Shown here: piece after piece, positions 3,647 through 44,986 of the stretch | Numbering within the stretch: position 1 is the first letter of the stretch | Layout: each line of letters opens with the position of its first letter | Source: Bigelowiella natans CCMP2755 | Lineage: Eukaryota; Protista; Cercozoa | Direction: 5' to 3' | Length of the DNA stretch: 54,237 bases | NCBI GenBank assembly: GCA_000320545.1 | Contig: ADNK01003260.1 | Span: forward strand, 1 to 54,237 | Translations under genes and position numbers: made by a program | The notes under the pieces: model-generated | Told to the model about the DNA's origin: nothing | Seen by the model: the letters and a program-made list of their open reading frames with translations, nothing else | Databases searched by the model: none

Positions 3647-4489
3647 GTGAGTGAGAAAGTGAGCGTGCTGCTGCTACTGCTTCTCTTGTATGCGTACGGT
3701 GCGAGTTCATGTCTTAAAATTTTGCTTTAAGTTTGCGGGCAAATAATGATGCTAATCGTAACTTCTAGACTAACTAGCTAGTCTAACAGTAGAGCGTATG
3801 CGGTGCCTACATGGTAGCATGTAGCTGCAGCGCTAGAGCGCGTGGCCGCTATATGTGCTGGTAGTGATACGCATCGGAGAAGGCGCTCCAACGACATGTC
3901 TAGATGTGTACGTGTGATGGCTAGATGGGTACGTATGTTGTTACGCGTTTATGATGTGCAATTTAGCAATATGCACTTGAATATTAAGAATAAAGTAATA
4001 ATTTTATTGTTCTAGTATATATAGATTTAAGTATTATTAGTCAACACTAGTACACAAGACACATTACACACGACATCTTTGCTCAATGATGTTTAGATGC
4101 ATGCCGAGTGATGACGTGATCTATCTGCTCTTAGTTTAGCGTATATTAACGCATGCGCACGGCACGGAATAGCTTCACTTGCGTGCTACGACGATACTAC
4201 ATCGTAGCTTCCCTCCCGCGTATATTTGACAAGTGTTAACTATTACGACGTGAGCCGCGTTGCTTTCAAGATAGTATTGTAGGGCACCAACCCGTAATTA
4301 TTTATTAAGATAGAGCTAAGTCCAGCTCGCACTGTGTGCTTTCGTTAAATAGTTCGCCCGACTGAGCTCTTTTTGCCTGCTGTTCCGTCTGAACATATGA
4401 CGCTACCCTGAGCATCATAGATGTCATATTTAAACTGTAATTGTGTGCGCAGTCATATATACACATATATATTATGTATATAATGTGAG

Positions 4490-22178: not shown

Positions 22179-23179
22179 GGTGTGACGACCGAGTACTGTG
22201 GTTGGTGTGCAGATCCAAGTCGAAAAGATTAAACAAAGAACATAGTCAAAATTCGTGGTGTAGGCATACCGTCTATCATGTTATCTGAAATGTACGCGGT
22301 GCAGCTTGCTATGAATTATCTCGCCATTCGTTACCCATGCCATCAAGCGCTCGGTTTTCCGCAGCAGCAGACATACTATCTAGCTATGTGGAACACATCA
22401 TCATATGTACGATACCGTGTACAGTGGTTGGTTTATACATTTATTAGCGCACAACAATGAACGTTTTATTAATAATTTGATTCGCGTGCTGCCATGCTAG
22501 CTAGCTAGCATGTGCGCGCTCTAGCGCTATCAATCACTGGTAGTGTGGATTGGGACTGGCGTAGATAATATTGCACGCATTGGACCGCGCACGCACACGA
22601 ATAGCCGTGTGGCTAGATATTTACATAGTGTCTACATGCAAAGCTAGCAAGCTAGCTGGAATGGCCATTCTAGCATTTTAGCATTGCAAAAAAATACAAT
22701 TGTATTCCACATTGCGTGCATTCGCGTCCTATCTACCTAGCTACCTAGCTAGCTAGCTATACAATACACTTGTAATCTTTCTATATGCCGCAATTGTACT
22801 CATTAAGAAGCGCGCGTACATGCTAGCATGTTTAGCAGACTAGCAGATCCATGACATGTCAGCCTCATACATGCTAGCATGTAGCGTCCACGGCATGTAG
22901 TTCGTCACAGCTAGACAGCTAGCACAGCACACAGCATACGCTCACACGCTAGGGCGGCTCGCATTGTGACCAGCATCGATCGCAATCTGTAATGTGGTCA
23001 GCACCATACGCTCGCAGGCTAATTTTGCTTCATGTAGTACACAAAGGAGCATCTCTGATGGTAGGCGTACGTGTGGCCTAGTCCGCTGTCATCGCATTGC
23101 TTCCAATTTTGTTGTCGCTCCATATAGGTTACACCACATGCACGCCTGTCAGCTGTTGATGGCTAAAATTACACACACA

Positions 23180-33116: not shown

Positions 33117-36100
33117 ATGAAGTCTAGAGGTAAGGGGTTTGTATTATTTTCAGGCGCGGCAGCGATGTGAATCGGTGTGTTCAAAGGCAGCACGTTGATG
33201 TCATCATGTTTAATAATACAGAAGAAGCCGAGGGGGCAAGTTTGCCTACATACTCCATGATCCTAGGCGAAATTCAGCTCCTTATGACAGTCATGCGCCG
33301 AAATCAAAAGTGGAAGACAGACCCTCTGGCTCTCAGCGTAAGTCGATAGCAGTACGAGTTTATTAAGCTAGAATTTCGCTTTATTTCGCACCTTGGCTGC
33401 GCATAAGCAACCCCGAATCTGTACGATCCCCTGTACTAATCAAATCGTTGCCCTGCTTCACAGAAGACCCAGGGATTCAACGCCAATACGTTTATTAAGA
33501 CATTGCAGAAGCTGCGTTGGTCAATGTCACCAGGCAACGAAGGTCTTTGAAATTCTGGCACAAAAACTTCTAATCCTGAGTCCCTATTCCCGGTTTCTAA
33601 AAATGTCTTTTAATTTTCTTATTTCGACTAGACCTCCATCCGGTGACGGTTGTGAGACCCTTTGTAGAAATCATTAAGGCAGAGGACACAACGGGGTTGG
33701 CAACCGGGCTTGCAATTGCATCTTTGCAGAAGCTTCTCAAAAGGGGCTTCTTCGAGGTTAAGGGTAGATCGGATAAGTACAGAGATAGCTTGGTGGAAGC
33801 CCTGGTATCGGTCGTGGATGCGTTAACGCATTGCCGATTCGAATCTACCGATTCAAGGAGAGATGAACTCGTTCTAATGAAAATGCTTCAGGTCCGACGC
33901 CTGTCTAGTGAATTAGGAAAGCCTGAAAATCCCTTTCCTTCAAACATGAATTCTTCGGCTTATTTTACTGTCTCGCGGTATCCGCAAGTACCCAAAAGGA
34001 AATAGAAATCGATTCTACATTTAATAAGGCAACTGCGCGTAAGCACTCATATCCCTCATTCTTCCCTCCTCCCCCTTTTTGCTTTCTGCTTCTTCCTCCT
34101 CTCGCCCCAAATAGGCTCTCTCTGCCTGTCTTGGGTGTTCAGCTGGGATGTACCTACCGGACGAAGATGTTTGGTGTATGATCCAGACGTGCTATAGAGT
34201 ATACAAAGTAATGCGCCCTCCCGACTACTCTGACCTGCTATGCGAGGCAGCGGAATCCATCCTGAAGGAGATGGTAGCAATAGTATTCACAAAAGGCCAC
34301 CTGACTAGCACCCCTGCCCTTTCTAGCCCAAATGCTATCGTCCAACCCCAGGCAGTTGAGGAGAAGGAACAGGTTGAGGGTGATACTAAAACGACTACTT
34401 CGGACAGCAAACGTGTACGGCCCTCCTACTCCTCCTCCTCCTCCTCCTCCTCCTCCTCCTCTCGCTTTGGAATAGACTGTGCAGTCCGTGTGATGGAGCT
34501 CGTGTGCTCCTTATGCAAGACTCGCAGGCATGTTGGGAGCAAAGCTGCCACAAACGACGCACAGACCCTCGGCTGCCAGCTTCTCCTCAGCGTGCTAGAA
34601 TCCAACGCGGAGAGAATCTCGCAGATTCCACGACTAATGTCTCTGATCGAGGACGATGTGAGCTTCTTCCTCGTATCAAACTCGGCAGCAGCAGGCAATC
34701 CACTTATCTTTAGTTTCACAGTGAGAATAATATACCTTCTTTACACGAGCATGCGTAGAAAACTCAAGACCCAGGTCGAGATATTCATCTCCCAGCTCTA
34801 TATGCGGCTACTCGTGGAGCAGCAGCAGCACCAAAAACAACAACAACAACAGCAACAACAGCAGCTAGTTATACCTTATGAGATTCGAGAAACTCTCCTG
34901 GAAAGCATGCTTGATTTTGCGCGGATTCCATGGTTCTTTCAGGACCTCTTCATCAACTTCGATTGCCAGCCGCACTGCGAGAATCTGTGCAACGACTTGC
35001 TCGCCCTGGTGTGCAAGGCTGCTAGGCCCACTGATACTGTGTTCCTCACAACCAATCATGTCGTCGCACTTAACACTCTTGTGGAGGTGCTGGAGTCAAT
35101 AGCTTTACGTTGCTGCTGCCCCAGCAGCGATGACGCTAGTAACAGTCAGCAAGAAACGAGGAGCCTGCTGCTTGAGGAGGTGAAGGAGGAGGCAAAAAAG
35201 AAAACAGACAACGACGAACTCAAATCCAAGCCCACTGGTGACAAAGACGAGGAAAAGAAAAAGGCAATCACTGCTGCCGCAGCCCACTCGTCGTCACTTT
35301 CTGGGTGGCAGGGAGGCACTCTCTCTACCAAGAATGCCCTTAATGCTTGTGTGCTCGAGTGGAATAAGAAGCCAAAGAAGGGCATAATGATGATGGTGGA
35401 GCAGGGCTTCCTCTCTGGGGCTCTCCGAAGCCAAAAGGACCAGCGTGCCGACAAGGAATTCGCCGCATATCTAAAGGAGCTCGGAAAGTACCAGAAAAAG
35501 GCTTACAACGTCAAGTACAAGCTCAGAAAGCAGCGCAAGTCGCAGCGGGAGAGCCTGATGCAACAGCAGGGAATGACGCGAGAGGAAGCGGAAGCAAAAC
35601 TCGGTCCCCTGGAGATACCGAAGGATGAGAACCCGCCGCCGACTCCTGTTGCGAGCTCTTATTTCATGCAACGACAGGCACGGATCGAGCCAGAGGCAAA
35701 AAAGCTCGCGTGCATACTTCGGAAAAACCCCAACGTTGACCTGAATGTGCTAGGGGAATTCCTTGGAGAGCCGCTCCAACTCAACCACCTTGTGCGCGAG
35801 TCTTTTGTGTCAACCTTCAACTTCCGCGGGCTGAGCATCGATGCCGCCCTCCGCACCTTCTTGGAATCCTTCCGCCTACCGAAGGAGGCGCAGCAGATTG
35901 ACCGGTGTCTCCAGTCGTTCTCTTCCTCCTTCCATGAGCAGAACCCCAGTTACATGGAGAGTGAGGACGGCGTCTACACGCTCGTCTTTTCGTTGATTAT
36001 GCTGACCACCGACCTCCATAACCCCCTTGTCCCGAAGAAAATGAGCTTGGATCAGTACCTCGTAAACACGAGGAATATCGACGACGGTGATGATGTGCCC

Positions 36101-39100
36101 AGGGAGGAGCTCGAGAGGCTGTATAAGGACATCTCCGAGCGCGAGATAGTGATGTCGGGCCGTGGCTCAGGGATTGAGGTAGCGTCCACCAGATATCATC
36201 ACCATATAACTGTTCCTACTACTCTGCCTCTGTATTAGAATTAGCGTGTGGTCGTTTCATTTCTTTCTTCCTCTCCTCCTTTCTCGCTGATCTAGTTCGA
36301 CGTTCAAGACAAAGCACTTCTTCTTCACATCTGACTCACTCACTCACTGACTGACTGACTGACTGACTGAATGATATTAGGTGGGCTACGAGCTGTGGAA
36401 GGACATCATTCACCGTTCTCGCATCTTCGAGGCTCCTCCCTACAACGTCGTCGCCGAGAGCCACCACCCCCCTTTGCTGGTAGATAAGGAAATCTTCTCG
36501 CGGATCTGGGGGGAGCTGCTCTCCGTCCTCTCCAGCGTGTACAGCAAGGCGAGGCAGGAGCACGTGATCAAGCTCGTGGAGAGGGCCTACAAGCTTATTG
36601 CAGAACTTGGTGCTGCATTCAATCAGCAGGATGCGTTGGAGTCTGCTGTGCTGGCCCTGGGTAGGCACACCGCCCTCCTCGTACTTGGTGGTAGTAACGG
36701 CGCAACCAAGGAAAAGAAGGGGTCGGGGCAAGCTAGTAGTAGCAGTAGTAGTAGCAGTAGTGGTAGTAGTAGTAATAGTGGTAGTGATAGCAACAATATT
36801 AATGGTGGTAGCAGTAGTAGTAGTAATAGTAGTAGTAGTAGCTTTAAAGGCGTAAATGGTAACAGTAGTAGCAGCGGTAGCTCCTCACCGCAACAGCACG
36901 ACATAGTTCGCTTTGCATCGAATCCTAGCTCGCTCCGCGCAGTCAAGATCTTCTTTGGAATGATCGTGCAGTACGGTGGGGCGCTTTCTGAGTCCGTGTG
37001 GGGTGACATCCTCATCTGCCTGCTGCAGCTCCACCTCATGGATGTGCTCCCCAAGAACATTGCGACAATCAATGATTTCGTCTCGGGTCCGCGCTCGCGC
37101 AACGACACCCTGACCCTGACACCGATTAAATTCTCGGAGCCGCAGGAGGGGGAGGCCGGCAGCATGGTCTCATCCCTGCTCTACACGATGAGTTCATACT
37201 TCTCGCCCTCCCCCGTCCAGGATACGCGAGAGCAGCAAAACCGCAGAGAGAAGCTCCTCTCCGTCGCCAAGGGCTGCCTTCAGGAGTGCCAGGCAGATCT
37301 AGTCCTCTCTCAGACGAAGAGAATCAGCCTTGAGGCCCTCCACGGTCTCATGAACTGGATGCGAACGCGTTGTGACGCGGTGAGGCTGTCCGAAAAGCTC
37401 TGTGCTATGTGCTGGCACAATACCGTCTACGTTTCCACGCGGAGGAAGCATGCTCAACAGCTCTTCAGGGCCAGGGCAGCAAGAAGACATGGTGTCAAGA
37501 GAGCGACCTCAGCCCCCTCGATGAGGAGGATGATGATGACCAATGGAGAAAGCAGCAGCAGTGGTTTAATCGCTGAGAACACCACGAGTAGCGGCAGCCT
37601 CGTGATGAAGCACAACGACAAGGCTGGAAATAAGCTGAGGGCTGCCACAGACAGCAGCGCTGCTTCTCCTTCTGATCGGCATCACAAGGAGGAAAAGAAG
37701 AATATGGCACAGTCTCCAGCTCAGAATACCAGCAGCAGTAGCAGCAGCGGCAACAGTAAGTCCGCAACTGGGCTGCTGCAGCAGCGCAGCATGGAGGAAG
37801 AGAGGGACGTCGTTTTGCGAACTCTCTCTGTACAAGAAGCCCAGAATCAACAGCAGATACTAGAGGTATTGCGGTGATCTCCTGCGACATCGATGCCACA
37901 TCCACACACTCACACACACACACACATACACACGCATAAATGCATACATGCACATGCAGTACTGTAGCAAAGAAAGTAAATTCTAACTCCTCGCCCCTTT
38001 CTTCCCCAGCTAAATCTCCAGGAGGAGAAGAAGTACCTCCAGGATTGGATGGAACTCAAGCGACAGCAAGGCTGGCAAGCGGATGGCAGCAGCTTATATG
38101 AATCTTCGTCATCATCATCATCCTCCACCTCGTCCTCGGAGAAGGGAAGGCGGTGGAGCTGGGGCTCTCATGGCTGGCTGCCGGAATCTCTTAGGTCGCA
38201 GCTCCTTTTCATCCACTTCTTCACCCAAATCACGCTGCACAATAGCCATCGCTTCGAGCCCCTGTACCCACTTATACGGCAGTTTCTCACTGACCTCATC
38301 GTTGGACGGGGGGGGGACAAAAAACACCGAAAGATGGCCAAAGAGAAAGGCCACCATGATGGTTCCTACCAAGTCCCAGCCTCGATAGTTGAGAGCGCGG
38401 TTGTCTCGCTGATCGTCATTTCATCGCAGATGCTCGACAAACCGGAAAGCTTCCGGTTCGGCTTGGAATTGCTGGAGATACTGCGAAAGACTGACGAAAA
38501 AAGGAGCATTCTCATCGCCGAGCAATTGGCCTACGGTGTCCTCTTTCTCATACATGAATATCGGAAAGTGATCGAAGATGCTTCAACGTGGCAGTGCATC
38601 TTAGATCTGGTGGGGCGGAGTGTCAAGCACCCTGCAACAGCGTTTGCAGGCGCGAAAACGCTGACGTTAATTCTCACCGACCCGCTGTGTCCCTTCCTGT
38701 CGCTTGCCACCTTTCATCAGACAACCTCGGTTGTGTTTCGATACGCACTCGCGGTGAGGGACAAATGCATTAACCTGCTGCATGTGCTCTTCCGCCGCCT
38801 CGTCGCGCTGCTCAAGAAACATACCAAGAAGGGCTGCGTGGTGGCGCTGCCCAAAGAGATGCAGAAGCAAGTTACTGCCGCTGCCGCCGCCGCCGCCTCC
38901 ACCGATGATGAAGGATTGTATTCTTCTTCAGTATCAGGTCTTACGACTGAGGATCTTGTTGTGTGGAAATCATGCTGGAAACCCCTTCTTAATGCCATAT
39001 GCTCCCTGTGTTGGCGACTCAAAGCGCCCCACAGCACCCAGGCTCTAAATGTGTTGCAGCAGCTGCTCCTGTCTCCGGACCTTCCAGGAGGAGCTACCAG

Positions 39101-39758
39101 TTATGCCAACCACGAGGTGGAGGACGGGGGGGAGACTGATAGCAAGGAGGGGGGGGATGTTGCAGCCGAAGGGGGAGGAAGTAGGGTAAGGCGTAGCACT
39201 AGCACTAGCATCTCAGCAGCTGCGAGCCATTTTTGGCAGAGCTGCATCAACGACATCATGGTTCCGAACTTGAAGCAGCTAGGCTCCAAAAGAGTGGATG
39301 AGGCCAGGCCGCTCAACCAACTCCGCCAGCGCGGACTCGGCTTGCTGGTGAAGATATTCCTGCAAAAGCTGCACACCATGCTGCCCCTCAAAAATTTCCA
39401 CGTTATCCTCGTTAATGTAATTGACACCATACAACAGTACGTTACGCTCGGAAAGGACTCCACTTTGGGTGAGATGGCCCTCGAGGCGCTGAAGAATCTG
39501 ATGCTTGTGATGTCCTCCACCGGTGCCTTTTCACCCGAGCAGAATCCGACTGGGAAAGAGTTATGCGACCTTGCATGGGCGCATATCGAGCCAGTTTGTC
39601 CGGGGCTGAGGGAAGCCTTAACCCCTAGTAAAAAAGATGAGGTTCCAGGGAAAGTGGAATCCGATATTGGAAATGACAATCTTAATAATAATGCAGTTGC
39701 CTCCACCCCTCCGCATCAGCAACAACCGCAGAGCAAGAGTAGCGATGATGCGTCGTAA
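33117..39758 (+). CDS. GBF1: Large Sec7-domain ARF guanine-nucleotide exchange factor, GBF1/GNOM/Gea class
   Basis: The DCB region reads MILGEIQLLMTVMRRNQKW, PFVEIIKAEDTTG and CRFESTD..DELVLMKMLQ. The HUS box reads LFINFDCQPHCENL. The Sec7 domain reads LGEFLGE, LRTFLESFRLPKEAQQIDR and FSLIMLTTDLHNP, followed by C-terminal HDS-like helices (EALKNLMLVM). Confidence 0.92.
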
Positions 39759-40099
39759 TGTTAATTGATATAAGTTTCCGAGCCAGCGAGCCGTATTAAT
39801 AGATCATTAATTCAAAATACGAAGGGCAAAGTCATATGGTTACATGTCTAGATGTAGAACTTCCATGTTTTTCCTTGCTGCTCCAACCGCATTATTTGTA
39901 TGTGTATCGCATCGCACGCGAAGCCGTCGTCTAGTTGTATAGAGACAGATGCGCCAGCAGAGCACATCGAATAGCTGTGGAATTAGAGCGCACGATCTAG
40001 ATAATTGACATTGATGAATAGTAGATCTATACGATGTCTTATTGTGCTTTGTTTTACATTAGCATCACAATCACTGCGAGCAATAATGCGATACACTGG

Positions 40100-40170
40100 C
40101 TAGCTGGATCACATTAGCTACGTGCTAGCGTGCTTACCTAGCCACCATAGCATTAGTCATCCACCAGCAG
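40100..40170 (-). promoter_or_regulatory. Candidate (atypical) SECIS element in the MsrA 3' UTR
   Basis: The minus strand reads GCTGG-tgg-ATGAC-taatgctatg-gtg-gctag-gtaagcacg-ctagc-a-cgtagctaatg-TGAT-CCAGC. This gives a lower helix, an AUGA/UGA core and an upper helix. The unpaired AA is not at the canonical 11-12 nt spacing. Confidence 0.35.
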
Positions 40171-40494
40171 TCGACACCTTCTAGCCTTCTCATTTTTCAT
40201 CATGTAGCCACTATGATTTGTAAGTAAGCAACAAGGGCAATAAATACACTTGTTTCATGATCTAGCCGAATTTTTCCCAATGCAATTTTAGGAGTCTAGA
40301 AATGTTGTATAATCATAACAACTAGACAACACCCATCACATGCTAGCATGTGCGTAGCTTCTGATAATAGAGCTTGAGTCATTTCTACAGGATCCACAAC
40401 TGTAGAATGAACAAATTCAACCCTTCGCACGTAGCAAATAGGAACGAAGCTTGCTAGTTCCTCTGAATGCTTTGTGACTTTCATACGAAGAGCT

Positions 40495-41495
40495 TCAGAT
40501 ATCTCGATCATTATTGGCTACGCAGTTCGTGCAGGGTTTGTTCAAATTTCGTCTAGAAGTTCTCCGCACTCTTCTGAGACTGATTTTTTTCCTTTCGAAT
40601 GCTATCTGAAAGTAGATGACGAGGTGATGTTTTTAATTTAGACACTAGCAGATTGAGTTCGGTGAACCTTCGCAATTTTTAGGCGGAACTTTTGTTTGTA
40701 TTTCTAGAAAATACATTAGACATCTCTTCCATCATTACTCAATTAGTGCTAACACGAACAACTTACTTGATGATATTCCTCTGCCACATAGAATTCTTTA
40801 AGGGGAGCTACAATGGTCGTCACCTAGTTAAAGTTTGCGTTTCATAAGTAGTAGACTACTTTATTTCGAGGGGTAGCAATTAGTTACCGCTTTATTTTCT
40901 TCCTTCAATTGCTTAATCTACCGTATTATATCATTTCACACGATAAAAAGTGAATCATCTTGATAAGACCTTGTTAAGAAGGATATCTCTTTGCTCCTCA
41001 GACTGGTGCCACGCCCCTGATCTGGAGATGCGATTTAAGTGTGAGGGTGTGACTTTTGCCCTGCGACCGCCACTAGCACAACCTGTACTTGGAGCCAGAT
41101 TTGAGTGCAAAGTCGTGATTAGAAAAAAAGATATCAACCAAATTTCGATAGGATTCCATCGACGGATCAAACGTAACCTATTGGTCGTCCCGTCATGTAT
41201 ATTTCATCATCGCGATATCTATGTCAGAAATTGAAATATTACCTGCACCACCTCCGTATGGTCTGCTAAGGACTTGTAACTAGGATCCTTTTTCTCTCCT
41301 CCCTTATGTTTGCAAACACAGGTCGGCGGAATTCGACAGTCATTTTCTTATTGTTACCGTATAGCCAACCCGCGTAGAGACGACTCCTGGGCGCCTGGAA
41401 GGTGAGAACAGGTCCTCTGCGCCCCAAAATCATCCCATACCGAACGTACATGTGTTGGGAGGTGTTTCTCTCAAGCGGTTGTTATTCTTCTTCAT
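40495..41495 (-). CDS. MSRA: Peptide methionine sulfoxide reductase A, probable selenoprotein (UGA at the catalytic Cys position)
   Basis: Exons 41495-41358, 41302-41243, 41177-41083, 41021-40970, 40917-40888, 40823-40767, 40703-40668 and probably 40605-40495, all with GT-AG introns. Translation: MKKNNNRLRETPPNTCTFGMG*FWGAEDLF..PGVVSTRVGYT|GGEKKDPSYKSLADHTEVVQ|VTFDPSMESYRNLVDIFFSNHD..KYR|SGAWHQSEEQ..|VTTIVAPLKEFYVAEEYHQ|KYKQK. The TGA is codon 22 (41432-41430). The last exon is uncertain, with an alternative stop near 40638. Confidence 0.93.
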
Positions 41496-41807
41496 GCACG
41501 CGTTCCTTCACTCCCCACTCGGAAATAGCAATAAAGACAGATGATGCTGTGACGTTGTTTGGTCGAGTTGGGTGTCGAGGCATCGGGAATCCATCCCATT
41601 TGAGAGCTAACAAGGATGCAACCTGGGAACGTTCTCATGGGTTTTGGCCTGGGTTCTCACATATTTCATCGCCAGTACCCAGTCGCAGATCAAAATTAGA
41701 AACAATTATTGAGCTGGATAGCGTTGTTATTTGCTGCTATATATTTTGTGTTGTCGCTTCGAATAATTTCCCTGTATTTCTTACGCAATTTTGGTAGAGA
41801 ATCCCCC

Positions 41808-44800
41808 ATGTCGGGCCAACTCGCCCTCCTCCTCCTCGCCCCCTTCCTAATCACCGTCCCAGGTGCTCATGCTTTCAAATCAGCATCAAAAAGCCTCGAT
41901 TCATATCTAGGCTTCCCTGCACGTTCGCATCTCATAGGATGTGAAAATGATGGTCCGGTGCAGGCCATCGCGTGGGCGCAAGTGACTCGTGGAACACCGA
42001 GCGTGTGGTACTCTGTAGCGACGAGAAAGCGAGACGGCACTGATCATGGATTTAGCAAGCCCCTCATGATCGCAAATATAAGTGGAGATGCGGGTATGAG
42101 CGTGATGGGTCTTACTTTTGCCAGTAAAGATTGCGGTGATCTCCTGGTGACGTTCGGTCCGACTGCAGCTGCTAATCCTAATTCCGAGACCTGCGTTCCA
42201 AAGCCTTATGCCACGTACTTTGTTCAAGCAAATAAACCGGGGGAAATGATCAAGATTATTGATCTTGATGAGCTTCCTCAAGATGTGAATGTTGAGGCAG
42301 GAACACTGGATTACGTCGTAGATCATGGGTCCTATATAGTACATATTTGTAGTGTGATGACCTTTCTGAAATAAAGCTGTTATCATCATCCTCGTCGTCA
42401 TCATCATCAAAATCTTTATCAATTTTAATTGCTATTAATGTCATGATCACTATCATCTTTATTGTTCTCGTCAGTATAAGTAGTTGCAGCTGTGTAGCAC
42501 TAGAAGCTACGATAATGCTGTTGTTAACACATGCATGCATGTATGTATGTATATCACTCGAATTGCACTTCAAACACTCACTCACCACCACCACCCCTCA
42601 TTGCTTTGACAGTCCTGTAAGTTTCAACGGCAACGTTGGCCACATCGCGTCTGCCTCGCTCTTTCAAATAACAAAAAAACGGGTCAGCGGCGCTACGAAA
42701 CTGCTGAGCGTGAAGCAAGGCACAATTCGTGAGCTGGCGTGGTCTCCAGACGGCAGATGCCTTGCTTTCAGCAACAACAGGGGTACCCACGGCTTTATAG
42801 GGATCTGGAATCGCGATGATACAGAGATCACCTGGGTTGCTCCGAGTGTGGACACCGATATCTCCCCGGTCCCTTTGTATATCCACGTCGTCATTGGATT
42901 GTTGTTAGTGAATTTCGCGTTGTTTTCTCACCATCATTCCACTCGCGTTGATTTTTTAATTATTCGCGTCCATCCCTTTTGGCATCATCTAGGCGTTGCA
43001 ATTTTGGTGATTTTTCTCGTTTTTTTTTGTCGGGAAGGTATGGTCCAGCGATGGAAGCCAACTCGCATGGATACGTACGCTTGGGTCACAGAATGAATAT
43101 GACAGAGGTCAGTTACGTGTATTTGCCACTGCTCTATACATGATTTATGCATTTCCCAGTGGTTTGCACGGCTTTCCCACCTTTTCCTCCATACTCAGGG
43201 GAGATGGCAAAGGGCATAGATTTCTACCACACACGCACGCACCACACATGTTCCGATTTGTACACTCCCCGAGTCGTTCGGTTTCAGGCTGATAATACCA
43301 CAACCTTGACGACTCATAGGTCTCGGAGGGCAACGAGGTCCATCGTTTGAGGTATGGGTGGCTTCAATAAGCTCCTCTTCTTCTAATGGTGTGACAGGGC
43401 GCCGAGTCGTGAAATCGGCACGAAGAGTCTTCTCCGAATCAAAGTACGGTCTTGCTGACGACGGATCGGGTTATGGCAGCAGGCCGTTGCTGTGGGTCAA
43501 CAGTCACACACTTGTTGTTGGAAGTGAGGCCCACAGCGGTAGTGGTGGCAAACCTACTGAGAGCGACGGCTGGCTACATCCTGTCGCCATCGACCTGCGG
43601 CAGGACGCGGATGGTGGTCACGTGAGAGATCTCACCCCCGGCGCATTTGAGGTCAAACACTGGGTGTTGGGTCACCATGATGGAATGCTATATGTTGTCC
43701 ACAATGGAAGGGTCCGTGACGTCGCTGCGAAAGAAGAAGAAGAAGAAGAAGAAGAAGGCCTGCTCGAGACCCGCACGGTCTCGCGTATCGACCCAAGCAA
43801 TTCCTCCGATGTGTTACGCGTCATCGCTGCTGGGGGGGAACACGTAATCAATGGGATGTCAAACAGCGGCTCTGGCATTGTCCCTCTCAAGGGCATGATT
43901 GCGTACTTCTCCGCGGGTGTAGATCGCCCAGCTTCCGTTGCTGTGAGGAGGGCGGCTACTGCTGACGACGACGACGACAACGACGAAAATAGCAAGGACA
44001 ACGCAGCTTTCGGGCCTGAAGTCATCATCTCTGACCAGTCGTTCAGGCTCCCTAGCTTTGTTACTCCGAGAACACTGCGGTTTCCAAGTGAGGACGGGGC
44101 CTACATGCTTAGTGCACAGCTGTTTCTACCGCCCCAGGACAGCAAGTCTAAAAGCAACCACAGCGACGAGACTTCTGCTGATGCTGCAGCTGCTGCTGCG
44201 GTTCCTGGTGTGCTTTTTACTCACGGCGGCTCGCAGCGACAAATGTTTAGCGCATTTCACTTCTCCCCCGCCTACGCGGCGCTTTATGCGCTCAACCAGT
44301 ACCTTGCCTGCGAACTAGGGATGGCCATTCTCTCGGTCAACTACCGCAGCGGCATCGGTTACGGACATGATTTCCGCGTATGCAAGTCGTGTATGTGGAA
44401 GGGCGCTGCGGAGTATGGCGACGTGCGGGCCGCGGGGGCGCTCCTTGCGTCACTGAAGCAAGTGGACGGCTCTAAGATCGGCCTATATGGCCTCTCGTAC
44501 GGTGGGTTGAACACGATGCAGGGGCTGGTGCGAGACCCTGATCTCTTCAAGGCTGGGGTGGCTAATGCGCCAGTCTTCAACTGGATCTCCCAGGCACGGC
44601 GGGACGGCGCAAAATACGTAGACGTGCAGCCACAGTACAGGAGAGGATTCCACGCTCTGGAGACAGGACCACTTTCCGATGAGGCTAGCCCTGAGTGGCT
44701 GCAGCGCGCACTGGAAAACCAAGCAGAGGCTTATAAGAGTTCTCCTGCCTCTTTGATTCAAAACCTAAAGGGCCAGCTGCTCGTTATTCAGGGCGATGCA

Positions 44801-44986
44801 GATGATGAAGTCGCCTTCAGCGAAAGCATTGGGATCGTTCGAGCCCTGCGCAAAGCGGGATTGGGCCGATATGTGCAGACTTTGGTGTTTCCCGACGAAA
44901 CTCATGGCCTGGCTAAGTACAAATCCCAGCTTCAAGCTGCTGAAGCTACCGCAAGCTTTCTGCTGGAAACCCTTAATGCTTCTTAG
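41808..44986 (+). CDS. Secreted S9-family (prolyl oligopeptidase/dipeptidyl aminopeptidase-like) serine peptidase
   Basis: It begins with a signal-peptide-like sequence (MSGQLALLLLAPFLITVPGAHA) and has TolB/PD40-like propeller motifs (LAWSPDGRCLAF, VWSSDGSQLAW). The catalytic domain has HGGSQRQM, SVNYRSGIGYG, nucleophile GLSYGG, QGDADDEV and FPDETHG. Introns lie at about 42329-42612, 42869-43037 and 43108-43319. Confidence 0.9.

Follow-up and report, generated by a model that had tools for sequence, protein, structure and literature searches.

Structure of an MsrA gene on the minus strand

The window, meaning the whole 54,237-nucleotide stretch of DNA analyzed, is contig ADNK01003260.1 of the Bigelowiella natans nuclear genome, and coordinates given without a contig or locus name refer to it. 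A gene of eight exons for methionine sulfoxide reductase A (MsrA), an enzyme of protein repair, was found on its minus strand, running from 41495 to 40495. The coding part of exon 1 (41358 to 41495) extends from the ATG at 41495, the presumed start codon, to the residues VGYT and contains the G-U-FWG site, and its boundary is marked by an RNA joint at 41301/41357. Exon 2 (41243 to 41302) encodes GGEKKDPSY...HTEVVQ, exon 3 (41083 to 41177) encodes VTFDP...HD...KY and ends in phase 2, and exon 4 (40970 to 41021) completes YRS before continuing with SEEQ. These are followed by exon 5 (40888 to 40917), of only 30 nt, and by exon 6 (40767 to 40823), which ends in FYVAEEYHQ. Exons 2 to 6 are all bounded by RNA joints. 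Exon 7 (40668 to 40703) comprises 36 nt, is in frame, and is delimited by joints at 40605/40668 and 40703/40767, while the coding part of exon 8 (40495 to 40605) encodes a basic tail at the C terminus and ends in the reference strain's stop codon, TGA at 40497 to 40495.

The seven introns measure 55, 65, 61, 52, 64, 63, and 62 nt and are bounded by GT..AG throughout. When joined, the exons give a frame of 579 nt, equal to 192 codons plus the stop, in which the motifs VGYTGG, HTEVVQVTFDP, HD, YRS, and FYVAEEYHQ are present. The sole internal stop is a TGA at codon 22 (41430 to 41432, minus strand) in the context GGA TGA TTT TGG GGC, at the column of the catalytic Cys in the GCFWG active site. 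An earlier sequence-only reading had placed an MsrA of seven to eight small exons, joined through GT-AG introns of 52 to 65 nt, at 40495 to 41495. This span proved to be exactly that of the coding sequence, with eight exons, seven introns, and every junction seen in RNA. The MsrA motifs listed in that reading (GY.GG, H.EVVQV.FDP, HD, YRS, and FY.AEEYHQ) were all located on the minus strand, and the single interruption it reported at codon 22 was borne out, with no other stop among the 192 codons.

The 5' untranslated region (UTR) spans 41496 to 41641 on the minus strand, with RNA contigs extending to 41592 (runs X1 and X6) and to 41641 (run X5). It holds an upstream open reading frame, in frame with the gene, from an ATG at 41594 to a TGA at 41513 to 41511, 5 codons short of the main ATG, and a 3-nt deletion at 41545 in the strain of run X6 falls within it. 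The 3' UTR occupies 40262 to 40494 on the same strand, RNA contigs ending at about 40262. At this end, a weak match to a C/D-box snoRNA (snoR126, 20.4 bits, E = 1.3) was observed at 40262 to 40324 on the minus strand and is probably due to chance.

Assignment to the MsrA family

The Pfam PMSR profile (PF01625) matched exons 1, 3, and 6 in collinear order, at profile positions 9 to 30, 55 to 78, and 124 to 141. The exon scores of 16.6, 18.5, and 17.0 bits each lie below the cut-off of 23.7, and their rough sum lies above it. Local alignment with MsrA homologues extended from end to end at 36 to 57% identity and placed U at the position of the catalytic Cys. The active site reads GMG-U-FWG, and the substrate-binding motifs (VGYxGG, DHxE, YRS/YxS, and AEEYHQ) are all present and aligned. 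The gene product is a member of the PMSR (PF01625) family of MsrA proteins, for which Met-S-sulfoxide reductase activity is predicted.

Compared with classical MsrA, the gene has a shortened HD-to-YRS loop, a feature common to the whole subfamily to which the gene belongs, Cys-containing bacterial members included. Among the matches listed, the nearest Cys forms of this short-loop subfamily are bacterial-type proteins of 140 to 180 residues. In most relatives a Cys-Pro is conserved some 14 residues ahead of U. The Cys-Pro is missing from the window's copy, in which Cys16 is the only Cys near the active site.

Conservation of the in-frame TGA in paralogues and metagenome relatives

A PF01625 profile search of the genome contigs (91.4 Mb in 3,736 contigs) revealed further MsrA genes with a TGA at the same position. 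An intronless paralogue (G000:C3223:18894-19316, locus L007) has one internal TGA, in the context ...ETPANTATFGMG-TGA-FWGPEV..., giving a TFGMG-TGA-FWG site. At 57% identity to the window's model, it was the closest of the aligned set, the others being 36 to 54% identical. The two copies share the TFGMG-U-FWG site, the short loop, and a hairpin resembling a SECIS, the RNA element that signals selenocysteine (Sec) insertion, whose UGAN/UGAW core follows a pyrimidine. The paralogue differs in being intronless, in ending 9 residues after YHQ, and in having the upstream Cys-Pro. A third, multi-exon paralogue (L009 811-1668; G000:C2875, about 103681 to 104538, plus strand) reads ...ETPLHTATFGMG-TGA-FWH..., with an FGMG-TGA-FWH site. 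As judged from these sequences, the B. natans genome contains at least three Sec-MsrA paralogues, all within the short-loop subfamily. A genome-wide search with the pattern GGNTGATTYTGGGG gave seven further matches, which lacked MsrA coding and were attributed to chance. The intronless paralogue sits 2.3 kb from a GPx exon that also has an in-frame TGA (G000:C3223:16521-16637, L025) on the same strand, and the two may possibly form a selenoprotein gene cluster.

The part of the intronless paralogue downstream of its TGA was used as the query of a protein database, and the best 120 matches were listed. Among these, the closest proteins either were truncated at the N terminus or had W as the catalytic residue. 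For three such matches, all metagenome relatives (L027, L030, and L031), the underlying DNA was found to have an in-frame TGA in that same column. The residues upstream of the TGA (ETPxNTxTFGMG) are conserved in all three, and translation must therefore pass through the TGA. An alignment with orthologues, proposed as a check in the sequence-only reading, places U/TGA or Cys at the Cys column of GCFWG. TGA stands there in both paralogues and all three metagenome relatives, Cys in the other homologues.

The relative L027 (1396 to 2003 of a 32-kb marine metagenome contig) is an intronless Sec-MsrA gene, 54% identical to the window's model and, in the database search, 62% identical to the C3223 paralogue. 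It carries a textbook AUGA..AA..GA SECIS at 1951 to 2003, 94 nt past the stop. The gene adjoins an alginate-lyase-like gene, and its public protein is a cut version of 118 residues. The database entry for the C3223 paralogue is likewise a fragment (P0001), which starts directly after the TGA. The product of the window's gene was not found among the best 120 matches to the paralogue query, where its identity should place it. Both observations fit the earlier guess that gene callers would truncate or miss the gene.

Selenocysteine machinery and a SECIS-like hairpin

The organism had been supposed to possess selenocysteine (Sec) machinery, and several components of it were recovered. A tRNA-Sec scored 68.5 bits against a gathering cut-off of 47, with the anticodon TCA (ARAGORN), and collinear exons of SepSecS and of SelD were present. 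PSTK (KTI12 family) did not turn up in the exon-wise genome search; this blank is not evidence of absence, given exon-wise matching with short exons.

A UGA/GA pairing scan of every UGA against every downstream GA placed one SECIS-like hairpin (40406 to 40512, minus strand) far ahead of other structures. Its helix I comprises 9 bp (40512-40508 with 40410-40406 and 40506-40503 with 40415-40412), the core consists of a 5' UGAA (40497-40494) and a 3' UGAA (40419-40416), and helix II comprises 12 bp (40493-40482 with 40431-40420), followed by an unpaired AAA (40481-40479) and then an upper stem. The UGA of the 5' core also serves as the reference-strain stop codon (40497-40495), an unusual overlap.

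A strict generic filter, designed post hoc with the candidate already seen, was then applied. It required UGA-N, an ungapped helix II of 9 to 14 bp immediately followed by AA, a GA, and an inner energy no higher than -15 kcal/mol. Across both strands of the 54-kb window (108 kb), it returned a single match, at 40497-40416. A slightly looser filter applied to 26 other loci (162 kb, both strands counted) returned just one match, some 60 nt beyond the intronless paralogue's stop and on the right strand. The strict filter was passed in 4 of 2,000 dinucleotide shuffles of the 299-nt 3' region. In an unconstrained fold of 40514-40404, the minimum free energy structure equaled the centroid and had the same architecture, with a z score of only -1.7. 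The helix II sequences of the window's copy and the C3223 paralogue are unrelated, and both still pair.

The base that usually precedes a SECIS core UGA is A. In the window's hairpin it is C, and in those of the C3223 paralogue and of a loose candidate at L031 it is U. The hairpin resembles the canonical eukaryotic SECIS (PMC3753652) in its UGAN/KGAW core, which is the SECISearch3 core consensus, in its 12-bp helix II with unpaired A's directly after it, and in its extra upper helix (type 2). It is unlike the canonical element in having C before the UGA, in the identity of the core UGA with the stop codon, and in escaping recognition by Rfam. The Rfam SECIS models matched neither the locus nor the paralogue, and the hairpin searched by itself was blank as well. 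Genome-wide they gave a single weak match of 24.8 bits, despite at least 23 reported selenoprotein genes, and they were also blank on the textbook SECIS of L027, which served as a positive control. Since the control was missed and the whole genome yielded one weak match, the blank at this locus is uninformative. A scan of the 930 nt that follow the third paralogue's coding sequence showed no SECIS; none was identified for L030, and L031 gave only the loose candidate. Taken as a structural prediction, the candidate hairpin supports the presence of a SECIS element in the 3' region of the MsrA gene.

Other elements were considered and rejected. An AUGA at 40510 has no matching 3' GA, and a GUGA at 40339 forms only weak helices with several GA sites. 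A coding sequence ending at ...YHQVSCSC, with the SECIS in "intron 6," was ruled out by spliced RNA.

It is improbable that the UGA is instead read through by a near-cognate tRNA (for Cys or Trp) or that the true SECIS is a different element. Such readings could draw on the hairpin's CUGA in place of AUGA and on its overlap with the stop codon, and canonical core letters do occur elsewhere, at AUGA 40382-40379 with UGAU 40338-40335. The latter pair, however, has a helix II of 5 bp that is interrupted and an AA at the wrong distance, and it was discarded as a candidate. These readings are further opposed by a genome with dedicated Sec machinery and many selenoproteins and by the clear SECIS elements of relatives, such as that at 1951-2003 of L027.

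Transcription, splicing, and strain differences

RNA contigs of runs from three studies (X1, X5, and X6) were aligned to 39700-42100. All seven junctions were visible as joints in the contigs, as CT..AC on the plus strand and hence GT..AG on the gene strand. One X6 contig of 907 nt represents the whole spliced mRNA, from 41592 to 40262, with introns 1 and 2 confirmed by X1 and introns 5, 6, and 7 by X5. In one X5 contig, exon 7 is skipped in frame (joint 40605/40767), giving an isoform whose tail is 12 residues shorter. First mates of the raw-read run X17 map to the minus strand at MsrA and to the plus strand over the adjacent plus-strand gene, an orientation that agrees with a minus-strand MsrA transcript.

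The region 41357-41592 is covered by X1 and X6, from two studies, and the TGA at 41430-41432 is unchanged in both. Upstream of the ATG the transcript extends for at least 97 nt, and the UGA was spliced out in none of the contigs. RNA sequencing had been named in the sequence-only reading as the way to examine the junctions and the retention of the UGA, and both were seen. Of the findings it said would speak against recoding, TGT or TGC in reads and transcripts that start downstream of the UGA or splice it out did not appear in the X1 and X6 contigs, and a genome devoid of Sec machinery is contradicted by the components recovered.

The strain of run X6 bears the same species label and is slightly divergent, ten single-nucleotide polymorphisms (SNPs) and two indels being listed across 39700-42100. 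Within the catalytic domain there are two SNPs, both synonymous (N14 and F83), and a further SNP at 40412 disrupts one pair of helix I of the hairpin. A run of seven A's in exon 8 (40584 to 40590, minus strand) has that length in the reference, X1, and X5 and is A8 in X6. This shifts the exon 8 frame, giving a protein of 172 rather than 192 residues and a stop 55 nt upstream of the SECIS-like hairpin. Since X1 and X5 have the reference length, the polymorphism is apparently genuine. None of the relatives aligned has anything matching the basic tail that follows YHQKY; the tail's CxxC exists in the reference frame only, and the tail seems to be under little constraint.

These data also bear on the reading of the gene as an expressed pseudogene, in which a degenerating MsrA copy, stopped prematurely by the TGA, would yield only a 21-residue peptide. 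Decay would agree with a tail that is unconserved and frameshifted between strains, with an HD-to-YRS loop shorter than in classical MsrA, and with the lack of a match to curated SECIS models. Against this, the short loop characterizes the subfamily as a whole, with bacterial Cys forms among its members, both catalytic-domain SNPs are synonymous, the seven introns have canonical sites, and no other stop occurs in 192 codons. The same TGA is moreover found in two paralogues and three metagenome relatives at 41 to 57% identity, with conservation on both sides of it, and we regard this reading as highly improbable. An assembly or sequencing error concealing a true TGT or TGC is refuted, because the RNA contigs of two studies, assembled independently and one of them from a divergent strain, match the genome across the codon, and the paralogues likewise have TGA.

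Three neighboring genes were noted, all on the plus strand. A large Sec7/GBF1-like gene (34148-39758) converges on MsrA, an expressed gene (41709-42374) is divergent from it and starts about 200 nt upstream of it, and a gene of the prolyl-oligopeptidase family (43358-44986) lies farther along the window.

Proposed function and relation to known selenoproteins

We consider it very likely that the locus is a functional nuclear MsrA gene of B. natans with Sec as its catalytic residue. The TGA at the active site almost certainly encodes Sec. The recoding of the UGA suggested by the sequence-only reading has gained support from the retained codon, the conserved column, the Sec machinery, and the SECIS-like hairpin, from which we infer Sec insertion itself.

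In the catalytic cycle of MsrA enzymes of this kind, the Met-S-sulfoxide is attacked, a selenenic acid intermediate is formed and resolved by a Cys, and the enzyme is reduced by a thiol system. Under the mechanism proposed here, the SECIS-type kink-turn hairpin (40512-40406) would recruit Sec-insertion factors, and Sec-tRNA(Sec) would then decode UGA-22. By analogy with general MsrA chemistry, the selenolate would attack the sulfoxide of Met-S-O to give the selenenic acid. A nearby Cys would resolve this intermediate, with Cys16 as the candidate in the window's copy, and the enzyme would be re-reduced by a thiol system.

Chlamydomonas was the source of the first Sec-MsrA to be described (reviewed in PMC9404770). 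The C. reinhardtii selenoprotein MsrA (AAN32904) is, like the proposed product of the window's gene, a eukaryotic algal MsrA with Sec in place of the catalytic Cys of GCFWG, its UGA being decoded with the aid of a SECIS in the 3' UTR. Compared with it by description, the window's gene differs in belonging to the subfamily with the short HD-YRS loop and in its unique basic C-terminal tail. Among algal Sec proteins, MSRA ranks with the most widespread (PMC7539508). The survey "The algal selenoproteomes" used the B. natans assembly ADNK01000001-ADNK01003736 (3,736 contigs) and reported 23 selenoprotein genes for the species (PMC7539508). The algal MSRA selenoproteins of that survey thus share family, organism, and assembly with the window's gene.

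Sec-MsrA in algae has been known since 2002 and is well established, and the B. natans selenoproteome was surveyed in 2020. The window's gene is a new or newly resolved Sec-MsrA, in which only the overlap of stop and SECIS and the three-paralogue subfamily go beyond the routine; general knowledge of selenoproteins is unchanged by it. The result puts right the reading of a gene that would be cut short or overlooked by ORF-based calling and by most automatic gene prediction.

More tentatively, and with somewhat less than even confidence, the genes may represent a distinct Sec-MsrA subfamily of B. natans and other marine protists, characterized by the short HD-YRS loop, a candidate resolving Cys within a Cys-Pro upstream of U, and pyrimidine-preceded SECIS cores, with three paralogues in this genome and, in the window's copy, a SECIS core UGA that doubles as the stop codon. 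If this is true, a ribosome that terminates there would be positioned on the very element responsible for recoding the UGA upstream, and the overlap of stop and SECIS would be removed by the natural A7/A8 indel in the X6 strain. A natural overlap of stop codon and SECIS core could be used to test how near translation may come to a SECIS.

A genome-wide palindrome in the 3' UTR

The transcribed 3' UTR of the MsrA gene also contains the 12-nt palindrome CATGCTAGCATG, at 40339 to 40350, about 80 nt before the mRNA end. It has the form of CTAG together with a copy of the adjoining 4 letters. There are 3,828 copies in the 91-Mb genome, compared with 7 for the reversed control. The window contains 4 copies (40339-40350, 22819-22830, 22870-22881, and 3810-3821) versus 0.24 expected, and further copies were seen at about 1154-1165 of L007 and about 2700 of L024. 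The palindrome is a genome-wide motif and no part of the selenoprotein signal.
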